Sequence record: OP292654.1
Strand: one strand, 5' to 3'
Length of the DNA stretch: 64,000 bases
Shown in pieces: positions 5,550 through 26,635 of this stretch. Made by a program: the position numbers and the translations under genes. A model generated the notes under the pieces. That model had not been told where the DNA came from. It worked only from the letters and a program-made list of their open reading frames with translations, and ran no database searches. The stretch's first letter is position 1; every line of letters begins with the position of its first letter.

Positions 5550-5706
5550 AAATTGAGAAATACATAAGCCGTGCTTTCTGGCAAAAACCAGATGTAAGAC
5601 CGTTTACACTTCAATGCTAGTACTGGATGATCCCTACTCGTTAGAACTACCAACTTCCAGGGCGATGTATTTCTTTTAAGTAAGAAAAATGGACTTTGTT
5701 GTTGAT

Positions 5707-5714
5707 TATAAATA
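5707..5714 (+). promoter_or_regulatory. T4-type late promoter
   Basis: Exact TATAAATA ~30 nt before the SD-supported ATG at 5743. Confidence 0.55.
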
Positions 5715-5742
5715 TCTTTTTGCAATCAACAAGGACAATGGA

Positions 5743-6597
5743 ATGAACAAAAAAGAAGCTAAAGCACTTGACAAATATTATACTAATGATTCTGTAGCTG
5801 AATACTGCTATCAGGAATTTGTCAAGTTCTGTACAAAATATAAGTCAGAACCGTACACGATTATTGAGCCAAGTGCTGGCGGTGGAGCGTTTCTTAATAT
5901 TATTCAGGAAGACAAAATAGGGTTTGACATTCTCCCTGAATCTGATAATATTATCCAAATGGACTTCATCAACGGGAACATTGAAGAATATCTACCACAA
6001 AATGATGTGGTGTTTTTGGGAAATCCACCTTTCGGTAAGAAAGGAGATTTAGCTATTCAATTCATCAATAAGTGTTTTGAATACAGTACTATCGTGGGGT
6101 TCATTCTCCCTGTACAATTCAGAAAATATTCTGCTCAAAAACAGCTTGACAGTAGAGCTAGATTGCTGTATGATATTGACTTAGATGAAGATTCGTTTAA
6201 TATTGTGGGTGAATCTTATGGTATTCGTTCATCATTCCAAATATGGGGAATTGGTGAATTTGAAGAAGAAAACCTAAGAATCGTTGAAAAGCCTCAAACT
6301 AAACTTGACATGTTCGAAATGTACCAGTACAATAGAACAGAAGCAGCAATGAAATATTTCGATTATGATTGGGATTTTGCTGTTCACCGTCAAGGTTACT
6401 ATGACTTCTCAGAGATCATTCGAAGTAAAGACGAGTTGAATCCGAAACGGCAGTACATATTCTTTAAAGCACACGATGCTGAAGTACTGGAAAATTTGTT
6501 GAACCTTGACTTCGTTCAATTGTCTAAAAAGAATGCTGGAATTCCAGGATTCGGAAAGGCAGATGTTGTTGAGGAATATCTTAAAAAATATTCATAA
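5743..6597 (+). CDS. amino-DNA methyltransferase (gamma-class motif order, probably N6-adenine)
   Basis: DKYYT (motif X), IIEPSAGGGAF (motif I), GNPPFG (motif IV); SD AAGGA before 5743. Confidence 0.85.
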   Translation: MNKKEAKALDKYYTNDSVAEYCYQEFVKFCTKYKSEPYTIIEPSAGGGAFLNIIQEDKIGFDILPESDNIIQMDFINGNIEEYLPQNDVVFLGNPPFGKKGDLAIQFINKCFEYSTIVGFILPVQFRKYSAQKQLDSRARLLYDIDLDEDSFNIVGESYGIRSSFQIWGIGEFEEENLRIVEKPQTKLDMFEMYQYNRTEAAMKYFDYDWDFAVHRQGYYDFSEIIRSKDELNPKRQYIFFKAHDAEVLENLLNLDFVQLSKKNAGIPGFGKADVVEEYLKKYS

Positions 6598-6609
6598 CCT
6601 GGAGTGTAT

Positions 6610-7311
6610 ATGTCAACCATCGTAAAAACTCAGATCGCAAAAAGTATCAACGACGCACTGTTCATGTTCAAAACTGCTGAGAAAGATCAGGTATTCGATG
6701 TTCGTTATGTTGTCCGTGGCGGCACTGACGTAAACAAAATCGAAGTACTGTTCATGGCACACATGGCAGCAAACATGGATCTACCAATCATGTACTCTGC
6801 GGAATTCAAAGAGAGCTACAAAGAGCATTGGGCTGAAAGTGGTAAGTACGCAGCATTGAACGAAGAAACCACTCCAGACGTACTGGCGTTCAACACGCAA
6901 GAAGTAATTCCAGATTGTATCGTCCATAACCCGAATGGTTCACAATCATGGCCTGATATTCTGGTGATTAAAGATAACATCGGTTATCCACTGGAAATCA
7001 AAACTGCGAAAGATACTGTTCCAAAAATGAACAGCGGTATCTTCCGTCTGAATACCCCATACATCTGTATGCGTAAATCAGACGACCCGAAAGACCGTGT
7101 GATGCGTCTGTTCATGGGGTCAGATATGGTATCGGCTGAGAACATTGTTCAGTGGCGTGAAGCTGGGGAAATGGTTGACCGTATCGTTAAAGCAACAAAC
7201 GCTCCAAACGAACGCTGGTGTTATGACAAGTACTTCAAAGCGGAAGATTGGTTCCCGAAAGATTGGGCGACTAAGCACGAAGCATCTGTTACCAAATACA
7301 TCAATAGCTAA
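6610..7311 (+). CDS. PD-(D/E)xK nuclease, restriction-endonuclease-like
   Basis: NPNGSQSWPDILV...YPLEIK; directly after the MTase, shared terminator. Confidence 0.6.
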   Translation: MSTIVKTQIAKSINDALFMFKTAEKDQVFDVRYVVRGGTDVNKIEVLFMAHMAANMDLPIMYSAEFKESYKEHWAESGKYAALNEETTPDVLAFNTQEVIPDCIVHNPNGSQSWPDILVIKDNIGYPLEIKTAKDTVPKMNSGIFRLNTPYICMRKSDDPKDRVMRLFMGSDMVSAENIVQWREAGEMVDRIVKATNAPNERWCYDKYFKAEDWFPKDWATKHEASVTKYINS

Positions 7312-7316
7312 CAAGT

Positions 7317-7343
7317 AAGCACCGTATAATACGGTGCTTTTTT
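7317..7343 (+). terminator. intrinsic terminator
   Basis: AAGCACCGTA-taa-TACGGTGCTT plus T-run. Confidence 0.85.
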
Positions 7344-7363
7344 AATTTAGAGGATGAAAAAAA

Positions 7364-8056
7364 ATGAATATTGCTGAAAAGTACTATTGGATTACCAATC
7401 ACCCGAAATATGTTCCATTTGGTCACGATGCTGTTATTGAAATTACCCCTCATATGGTTTGTCCAGAAACCAACCGCATTGAAGATTTGGCATTGCTCAA
7501 TACCAAATTGCGTTTTTGGGTTGAGTTAATGATCCCATATGAAGATAAAGAAAATAACTATCACGGTTTCGCCCATGAATGGGAACTGGATTGCGGCGGT
7601 GATACATGGGAAGAAGCAGTTGAAACATTGTACCAGTTAGTACTGGAAAAGTACGGTGACTATGGTGATGATGAACTGGAAGAACACCGTAGGGTTTGGT
7701 TAGAAGAATCTAAAATCAAAATTCCAGGATATATTAGCATTTACGATAAACTGATGGGAGATTTAGATAACTTCAAAGCACCAGGCCCAGATTTATCTAA
7801 ACCAATCGTTAAACTTAAAGATTATGAAATCGAAAGTTTTAAAGAAGATGTTGAACATCTTGGAGTTCTGCTGCCTGTCCTTCAGGCAAAGTTGGCTAAT
7901 CCAGAACTAACTATGCAAGACTATAGTGATATTGAATTACAAATCACCTGTGTTGACCACGATTTGGAAGTAGCGAAACTCAGTCTAAAATATGGATATA
8001 ATGTAGAAGTATATGGTATCAGGGATGAAAATAACGAAACTGATTCGCATACTTAA
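7364..8056 (+). CDS. hypothetical protein
   Basis: ORF track, SD GAGG. Confidence 0.75.
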   Translation: MNIAEKYYWITNHPKYVPFGHDAVIEITPHMVCPETNRIEDLALLNTKLRFWVELMIPYEDKENNYHGFAHEWELDCGGDTWEEAVETLYQLVLEKYGDYGDDELEEHRRVWLEESKIKIPGYISIYDKLMGDLDNFKAPGPDLSKPIVKLKDYEIESFKEDVEHLGVLLPVLQAKLANPELTMQDYSDIELQITCVDHDLEVAKLSLKYGYNVEVYGIRDENNETDSHT

Positions 8057-25774: not shown

Positions 25775-26635
25775 ATGGAATATACCGGACAATCCCCGCA
25801 TCAAGTTATAGAATTAGGAACTAGCACAATTATCGTTATCAATGGTGATTGTGCTGAAGTTCTTAAGGAACTCCACGAATCGGAAATTAAGTTCAATTCT
25901 GCCATTACATCACCTCCTTATGCTGAACAGCGTAAAGATGTATATGACAGCATAAGCCCTGAAGATTTTCCTGAATGGTATAAAAATATCAGTACTGATA
26001 TTATGAATGTCATTCAGGAAGATGGCTCGTACTTCTTCAATATCAAAGAACATGTTGATAAAGGAAAACGTGATACATATGTGTATCGCACAATTATTGG
26101 CATGGCTGAAGATTATAATTGGAGTGACGAGTACATTTGGAACAAGACAAATCCTTTCCCAACTGGTGCTAAAACACGATTGAAAGATGGATTCGAACGA
26201 ATCTTTCAATTCAATCACACTTCGAAATATAAATTCTTTCCTGATGAAGTGAAAGTACAAAGTACTTCAAAATATTTGGAAAGTGAGAAGAAGCGTAAGA
26301 ATAAAGGTGAGCATAACGTTACAAATGGCAGTACTATGAATATGTCTAAGCGGGTAGCTGAAGACATGGTACGTCCAAGTAATGTACTGACATGTAGTAC
26401 CAGTAATTTAAATATTGGTCATCCTGCGGTTTACCCAATTGATATTCCTAACTTCTTTATCAAACTCAGTACTGAAGAACAGGACTGGATTCTTGATCCA
26501 TTTGGTGGTTCAGGTACTACAGCATTGAGTGCCGTACAACTAAATCGTAATTGTGTTCTTATTGAAAAATCAGAACAGTACTATAACCTAATTATCGAAA
26601 GACTTTTACAGCATGGTCGGGAGAATTATCTATGA
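25775..26635 (+). CDS. beta-class amino-DNA methyltransferase (probably N4-cytosine)
   Basis: Motif IV TSPPY precedes motif I ILDPFGGSGTT; SPPY is typical of m4C enzymes. Confidence 0.85.
   Translation: MEYTGQSPHQVIELGTSTIIVINGDCAEVLKELHESEIKFNSAITSPPYAEQRKDVYDSISPEDFPEWYKNISTDIMNVIQEDGSYFFNIKEHVDKGKRDTYVYRTIIGMAEDYNWSDEYIWNKTNPFPTGAKTRLKDGFERIFQFNHTSKYKFFPDEVKVQSTSKYLESEKKRKNKGEHNVTNGSTMNMSKRVAEDMVRPSNVLTCSTSNLNIGHPAVYPIDIPNFFIKLSTEEQDWILDPFGGSGTTALSAVQLNRNCVLIEKSEQYYNLIIERLLQHGRENYL

Follow-up and report, generated by a model that had tools for sequence, protein, structure and literature searches.

The window analysed here is a stretch of 64,000 nt from the genome of Xanthomonas phage XbC2 (OP292654.1; window position = record position - 62000), a RaK2/GAP32-like jumbo phage of the genus Mimasvirus with a genome of 367.9 kb. 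We think it fairly probable that positions 5685-7345 are a horizontally acquired Type II restriction-modification (R-M) cassette, probably specific for TGCA, which was inserted as a self-contained unit at a conserved site of the phage backbone. In the following, M is the methyltransferase gene, R is the nuclease gene, and the cassette is the M-R insert. The two genes lie on the same strand with a gap of 12 nt, and the features of the cassette are as follows.

5685-7345, plus strand: inserted M-R cassette (moron), absent at the same spot in GAP32, CBB and locus L019
5707-5714, plus strand: T4-type late-promoter-like word TATAAATA, an exact match, 36 nt before the M start codon and part of the insert
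5743-6597, plus strand: M, predicted gamma-class N6-adenine DNA methyltransferase of 284 aa; motif I IEPSAGGGAF at 5863-5892, motif IV NPPF at 6022-6033
6598-6609, plus strand: 12-nt spacer with a ribosome-binding site GGAG (6601-6604), as read from the sequence
6610-7311, plus strand: R, candidate PD-(D/E)XK nuclease of 233 aa from an unnamed family; W-P-D116 at 6949-6957 (P115-D116 at 6952-6957), E129-I-K131 at 6994-7002
7317-7345, plus strand: intrinsic terminator closing the cassette; 10-bp stem with five G-C pairs and a 3-nt loop (7317-7339), then a T-run

The initial annotation of this DNA had noticed an exact promoter word, an NPPF methyltransferase, a PD...EIK nuclease 12 bp further on and a strong terminator, and all of these are present at the positions it gave.

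TGCA depletion and the target site

Which site does the pair recognise? The window contains 70 copies of TGCA, while 214 are expected from composition and 238 from a Markov model. The syntenic 50 kb of GAP32, which belongs to the same genus but has no cassette, contains 311 copies against 314 expected. When the 136 strand-symmetric four-letter words are ranked by their XbC2/GAP32 density ratio, TGCA comes last at 0.18, and the next word stands at 0.61. The comparison was extended to seven cassette-bearing and eleven cassette-less loci. The observed/expected ratio of TGCA lies between 0.22 and 0.68 in all seven of the former and between 0.82 and 1.31 in all eleven of the latter, with no overlap. 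The contrast appears in both backbone clades, in one as XbC2 versus GAP32 and in the other as locus L005 (0.40) versus locus L025 (0.87). All flanking contexts of TGCA are depleted, and those outside TGCAT are depleted more, so the word is TGCA rather than TGCAT. The depletion is the same in XbC2, whose host is Xanthomonas, and in Erwinia phage Kaldavass, which is 90% identical to XbC2 over the region.

The same signal is seen at the scale of single genes and in some loci outside the phages. No TGCA occurs in the M and R genes of XbC2, nor in the bacterial cassettes of loci L008, L011 and L013, and the bacterial cassette of L038 has one copy against nine expected. TGCA is also scarce in two loci where an M homologue has no R-family gene beside it, namely L010 (1 versus 17.5 expected) and L009 (5 versus 23.8). 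The least depleted cassette carrier is L003, whose R has Asn for Asp116.

A published comparison of native and amplified DNA gives a view of modification in a close relative. Kaldavass virion DNA carries the modified motif TGCAT, and the authors list three methyltransferases, with CDS_0531 not among them (PMC11780129). This CDS_0531 is a 97% identical homologue of M. Phage Hallingskeid lacks an M homologue, and the modified motif TGCAT is absent from it (PMC11780129). Of the TGCA sites left in the window, about 73% are TGCAT when read on one of the strands, which makes a five-letter call understandable. Taken from sequence comparison, M and R would both recognise TGCA or a site containing it, a target assignment we hold with a little more than even confidence.

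A second DNA methyltransferase is encoded at 25775-26635 on the plus strand (XbC2 ORF148). It matches PF01555, has the motif SPPY, and its best solved relative is the N4-cytosine enzyme M.PvuII. The gene is present in XbC2, Kaldavass and GAP32 and absent from Hallingskeid, and GAP32 has it yet shows a normal TGCA count. None of the modifications reported for Kaldavass is assignable to this enzyme, unless it is TGCAT (PMC11780129). Its identification as an ATGCAT enzyme of the YhdJ kind was not adopted, as it scores 52 bits against a YhdJ cut-off of 292, carries SPPY and resembles M.PvuII, but it was left as a rival. Dam-type methyltransferases (PF02086) are absent from XbC2, Kaldavass and Hallingskeid. 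XbC2 DNA has been reported to be uncut by EcoRV (PMC11273794). This resistance was considered as a sign of modification by M and rejected: the window has a single GATATC where 21 are expected, and with sites so scarce no modification is needed to explain the resistance. Other palindromes are also purged from the window. GCGC is missing where 47-71 copies are expected, and 21 GC-containing palindromes of 6 bp are absent with about seven expected each. GTAC is in excess, with 485 copies against 214 expected.

The initial annotation had put the pair forward as a candidate for recognising AGTACT, a palindrome that saturates the phage and that the pair would mark or read. AGTACT is indeed enriched about tenfold in the window (186 copies versus about 19-21 expected), and by language-model features a cluster with RE_ScaI hits is a neighbour of R at rank 17 with a score of 0.86. 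However, the enrichment is equally strong without the cassette. Seven related cassette-less loci have 1.9-4.1 AGTACT per kb, with Hallingskeid at 4.1 per kb, and cassette-less GAP32 has 139 copies against 17 expected. R itself occurs in only two of 50,697 phage records and is missing from nearly all of the enriched phages, and non-phage loci with M, with or without R, contain only 0-3 copies. In Kaldavass, Nanopore sequencing of native versus amplified DNA found modification at GATC, CCWGG and TGCAT, and AGTACT was not reported (PMC11780129). What is more, the RE_ScaI model (PF09569) has no match in R at E-values up to 1, none in 36 relatives of R at 0.01, and none anywhere in XbC2, Kaldavass, Hallingskeid or GAP32. 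When motifs are examined for enrichment and avoidance, AGTACT enrichment does not track the pair, but TGCA depletion does. The AGTACT proposal is therefore close to refuted and very improbable in our estimate; the pair is not the AGTACT reader.

The nuclease and its linkage to the methyltransferase

The only copies of R among the phage records are those of XbC2 and Kaldavass. A word-indexed search found six metagenomic relatives, 88-44% identical, and a full HMMER profile search added 58 more distant ones. The wider family comprises about 88 protein clusters, which are called "hypothetical protein" wherever they are named. An alignment of 36 members gives a family signature of PNGSQxWPD, followed by E-x-K 13 residues on and then by WNSG. 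P108, P115, E129, K131, N141 and Y151 are invariant, and Q112 and D116 are nearly so.

The structure prediction that had been suggested for the nuclease returned a PD-(D/E)XK-like fold. The AlphaFold model from a deeper alignment has a predicted local distance difference test score (pLDDT) of 92.6 and a predicted template modelling score (pTM) of 0.90. One modelled strand spans residues 103-106, P115-D116 opens the strand 117-121, and E129-I-K131 lies within the strand 124-133. In the model, this placement of PD and ExK is the classical PD-(D/E)XK geometry. Structure comparison matched EcoRV with a Z score of 6.2 (root-mean-square deviation 3.5 over 124 residues), ThaI with 6.1, HincII with 5.5, NlaIV with 5.3, SwaI with 5.2, MutH with 5.0 and PvuII with 4.8. 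PD-(D/E)XK nucleases make up 16 of the top 20 matches, and the resolvases Hjc and RecU are also found among the matches. By language-model features, the nearest named clusters are all Type II restriction enzymes. The best explanation of the modelled fold and the motif is that R is a PD-(D/E)XK endonuclease of an unnamed family, structurally nearest to the blunt-cutting branch of EcoRV, HincII, ThaI and SwaI.

The R genes also appear to be maintained. The ratio of nonsynonymous to synonymous substitution rates (dN/dS) of R is 0.07-0.09 in phages, which indicates purifying selection, and PD...ExK is retained in seven of eight phage copies and across the wider family. The copy at L003:1418-2113 has Asn for the catalytic Asp116, which takes two base changes (GAT to AAC). 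In the same contig, NrdD is called in pieces around a NUMOD4 homing-endonuclease gene (L003:7008-10113).

M matches the PADLOC model MTase_II PDLC03274 (1.2e-54) and phrog_5172 (1.8e-57); no Pfam model matched it, and no chain of known structure was found at a meaningful E-value. The search returned 348 homologues from bacteria, archaea and phages, many of them about 50% identical over the full length. Motif I precedes NPPF and the C-terminal half is variable, which is the gamma-class order, and annotated relatives are called N6-adenine or N12 class. The variable C-terminal half is presumably the target-recognition part. With dN/dS at 0.04-0.06 in phages, M is under strong purifying selection. 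Many phages hold an M homologue without R. Homologues of M occur in 238 phage records and also in locus L010, and the best match in a non-jumbo phage is a Helicobacter phage methyltransferase (36% identity, 4e-50). Orphan N6-adenine methyltransferases of rV5-like phages, the Pseudomonas KIL phages and Agrobacterium phage Atu_ph07 resemble M, being 31-36% identical over most of its length, but unlike the M of XbC2 they have no R partner annotated under these matches.

Is the pairing of M with R accidental? The genes are linked in all phage and non-phage loci with R that were examined; a lack of linkage in relatives had been named beforehand as part of what would speak against an R-M pair. All seven phage loci with R have an M homologue of 284-286 aa directly upstream. 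All seven non-phage loci (L008, L011, L013 and L035-L038, of which three could be assigned, to Burkholderia, Comamonadaceae and Azonexus) have an M homologue, 44-54% identical, directly upstream of the R-family gene; a scan of genome contigs with a narrower R alignment gave four loci. In Burkholderia locus L008, M (51%) is followed by an R-family protein of 304 aa (hhalign probability 100%, E 5.7e-60), and in L013 M (44%) is followed by R. In a Comamonadaceae genome and in metagenome-assembled genomes of Azonexus, Pedobacter and Ktedonobacterales, M (52-54%) ends 40-90 nt before R on the same strand. Several clusters of M and of R agree in the length of their longest contig (59436, 273941, 48635 and 37699 are examples), and in Methylococcaceae, clusters of M and R have the adjacent locus tags 05300 and 05305. 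R without M was never found in the loci examined. The Type II layout first noted for XbC2 thus recurs in distant bacteria, and together with the conserved nuclease signature and the modelled fold of R this makes the R-M reading of the pair well supported. As a further observation, a single M gene (50%) of the TrfA-bearing, plasmid-like locus L011 precedes a tandem of R-family paralogues, 332 and 334 aa long (L011:2990-5005).

The cassette shares its plan of a two-gene M and R unit with the Type IIP systems EcoRV, HincII, ThaI, SwaI, NlaIV and PvuII. Common to R and the EcoRV-like enzymes are the small single-domain PD-(D/E)XK build, the D that opens one beta strand and the ExK in the next. They differ in that no sequence similarity is detectable and Z reaches only 5-6, and the R family has its own signature (PNGSQxWPD...ExK...WNSG) without a database name. 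In function, the nearest parallels would be the chlorella virus system CviRI and the Helicobacter pylori system HpyCH4V. Their enzymes cut TG^CA blunt, and M.CviRI makes TGC(m6A). Like these systems, the cassette would combine TGCA, as predicted here, with an adenine-specific methyltransferase, and CviRI also comes from a lytic virus. No Helicobacter protein is among the R-family matches, so R may be unrelated to HpyCH4V even with the same site.

Insertion into the phage backbone and control signals

The cassette stands in a backbone that is conserved without it. Twelve further jumbo-phage contigs were found by the pattern of an RNA-like element that precedes the cassette, and 11 of them have neither M nor R, including GAP32, CBB, Serratia phage BF and Yersinia phage Yen9-04. 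In cassette-less phages, the element is followed by a homologue of the 230-aa gene (XbC2 7364-8056), either within about 20-30 nt or after small inserted genes. These phages have no promoter word of TATAAATA type at the insertion spot. The cassette brings its own TATAAATA and terminator. The gap between the element and the 230-aa gene (5679-7363) is an insertion hot spot, in which L018 and L022 have one open frame each and L020 has two. The 7-bp word AAGTAAG occurs at both cassette edges (5678-5684 and 7313-7319) and was given no weight. Contigs of three further metagenomic runs carry cassette variants, and no joint that skips the cassette was found among the contigs.

In a tree of the backbone RNA, L005, which has the cassette, and L025, which lacks it, are sisters in a well-supported clade other than that of XbC2, and L017, which has the pair, has a backbone element identical to that of L019, which does not. 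From these placements, the pair was gained or lost more than once.

The RNA-like element itself (5552-5678, plus strand) is a conserved structured element of about 125 nt upstream of M. Its closing stem is GAGAAATAC/GTATTTCTT, with a U-run after it; in addition there are a CUGG...CCAG hairpin, which is invariant, and a third stem that covaries. Compensatory changes occur in 17 of 25 pairs and 97.4% of cells pair, a result matched by none of 500 shuffles. No Rfam match was found at E-values up to 10. XbC2 and Kaldavass each have a single copy in the genome. All 18 related phage loci searched (XbC2, Kaldavass, Hallingskeid, GAP32 and 14 contigs of metagenomic or viral origin) have the element at one and the same position of the backbone, always just upstream of the 230-aa gene (phrog_16370) and a block of dCMP deaminase, thymidylate kinase and NrdD. 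It may be a leader or attenuator of these nucleotide-metabolism genes, or a small RNA. The element was rejected as a part of the cassette because it is a backbone feature that cassette-less phages have too.

How would the cassette be expressed? The word TATAAATA is rarer than chance in the window, with three copies where 8.3 would be expected. Each copy is intergenic, lies on the coding strand and precedes an ATG (5743, 52416 and 56202) by 36-46 nt. Such scarcity and placement are what a real promoter word purged from elsewhere would look like. At the M genes of relatives, the word is exact in Kaldavass and L007, and it reads CATAAATA in L005 and TCTAAATA in L003. Published work on CBB and GAP32, which are sister phages, describes a gp55-like sigma factor as well as a late motif, ATAAATA (PMC5259590), and the late-promoter reading of the initial annotation fits these published motif predictions. 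We infer from the putative promoter that transcription of the cassette would be late. The deposited start of M (XbC2_125, 302 aa) is at 5689, which precedes the promoter word; the extension is unconserved, and all relatives start at the methionine of MNKKEAK. The deposited start is thus probably 54 nt too far upstream (5689-5742). Sigma-70-like hexamers inside M (6146-6174 and 6305-6333) were rejected as promoter candidates, their number being not above regional chance (15 versus 10.1 +/- 3.2).

Alternative explanations and possible role

Several observations weigh against a TGCA-specific R-M cassette. R has no usable match in Pfam, NCBIfam, PADLOC, PHROGs or PDB sequence searches. Its structure matches, though consistent with one another, are individually weak, the best nuclease reaching Z 6.2, below a clear match at 8 or more, and the non-nuclease Rep15 reaching 6.7; in the Foldseek search, no E-value reached 0.001. 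TGCA is not depleted in the bacterial cassettes of L035 and L036. Since the genomes compared are related, the TGCA correlation amounts to about two or three independent contrasts. Restriction pressure at TGCA imposed by hosts could have depleted the site and also led to the capture of a protective methyltransferase, and the SPPY methyltransferase could be the source of the TGCAT signal in Kaldavass. As for expression, L004 has no TATAAATA-type match upstream of its cassette, and it would be odd to express an enzyme late if its purpose were the destruction of host DNA.

Part of these observations leads to a rival in which the R-M pair is real but its target is not TGCA, the purge would come from restriction pressure by hosts or from some other factor of the phage, and the SPPY enzyme or the host would make the TGCAT modification of Kaldavass. 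It draws on the fact that two methyltransferases, not one, separate Kaldavass from Hallingskeid, on the authors' remark that host enzymes could be responsible (PMC11780129), on the two cassettes that are not TGCA-poor, and on the few independent contrasts. But the SPPY enzyme of GAP32 goes with normal TGCA, and hosts as different as Xanthomonas and Erwinia go with the same depletion. The depletion also tracks M in every sampled context, including the two loci without an R-family neighbour, and it is strongest within the cassette genes. We regard this rival as rather unlikely. Still less likely, in our judgement, is that only M is useful, as protection against restriction, with R as a passenger without activity or as a nuclease of the resolvase kind, structure-specific or non-specific, that has another role. 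The abundance of orphan M homologues (the 238 phage records and L010), the Hjc and RecU resolvases among the fold matches and the loss of the catalytic Asp in L003 are in accordance with it. Against this stand the low dN/dS of R, the PD...ExK kept in all but one of the eight phage copies and in the wider family, and the absence of R without M in the loci examined; moreover, a resolvase would not be expected to keep a strict linkage to M, always in one gene order, across distant bacteria.

If the TGCA-specific R-M cassette is accepted, it gives the following scenario. The unit would be transcribed late from its putative late-type promoter. M would methylate the adenine of TGCA on progeny DNA, and R, which presumably acts as a homodimer since its site would be a palindrome, would cut DNA bearing unmethylated TGCA. 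The most attractive late targets would be co-infecting relatives and recombinants without the unit, with about 6 TGCA per kb; another option would be the salvage of remaining host chromosome DNA. The phage's own TGCA sites might have been lost since protection by methylation would be incomplete during fast replication, and their loss would lower the risk of self-cutting. A bolder form of the scenario, which we put forward only tentatively, is that a captured R-M unit with specificity for TGCA, whose endonuclease comes from an undescribed family, serves as a late weapon against co-infecting relatives and against recombinants losing the unit. The genome of each relative would then expose about 2,000 TGCA sites without protection, and the cost would be the purge of about three quarters of the phage's own TGCA sites.

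Complete R-M pairs in lytic viruses are known from the chloroviruses. In the R-M systems of PBCV-1 and its relatives, host DNA is degraded while viral DNA is methylated. XbC2 is likewise a large lytic DNA virus with a complete Type II pair, and methylation of its own genome is predicted. The chlorovirus nucleases act early and some are packaged, whereas the only visible promoter of the XbC2 cassette is late-type, and XbC2 differs also in that the presumed site is purged from its own genome.

The analysis gives a testable specificity, TGCA, to a family of about 88 clusters that has been "hypothetical" in every database entry seen, and it offers a possible explanation for the so far unexplained TGCAT modification of phage Kaldavass. 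It also removes the pair from the candidate readers of the AGTACT signal in this phage clade. For the lytic jumbo phages, it describes a movable insert that holds a complete R-M unit and goes together with a purge of the presumed site. This may be one of the rare clean examples in which a virus's own restriction enzyme has shaped its genome. If the weapon scenario were true, it would be phage-versus-phage restriction leaving a readable, genome-wide footprint.

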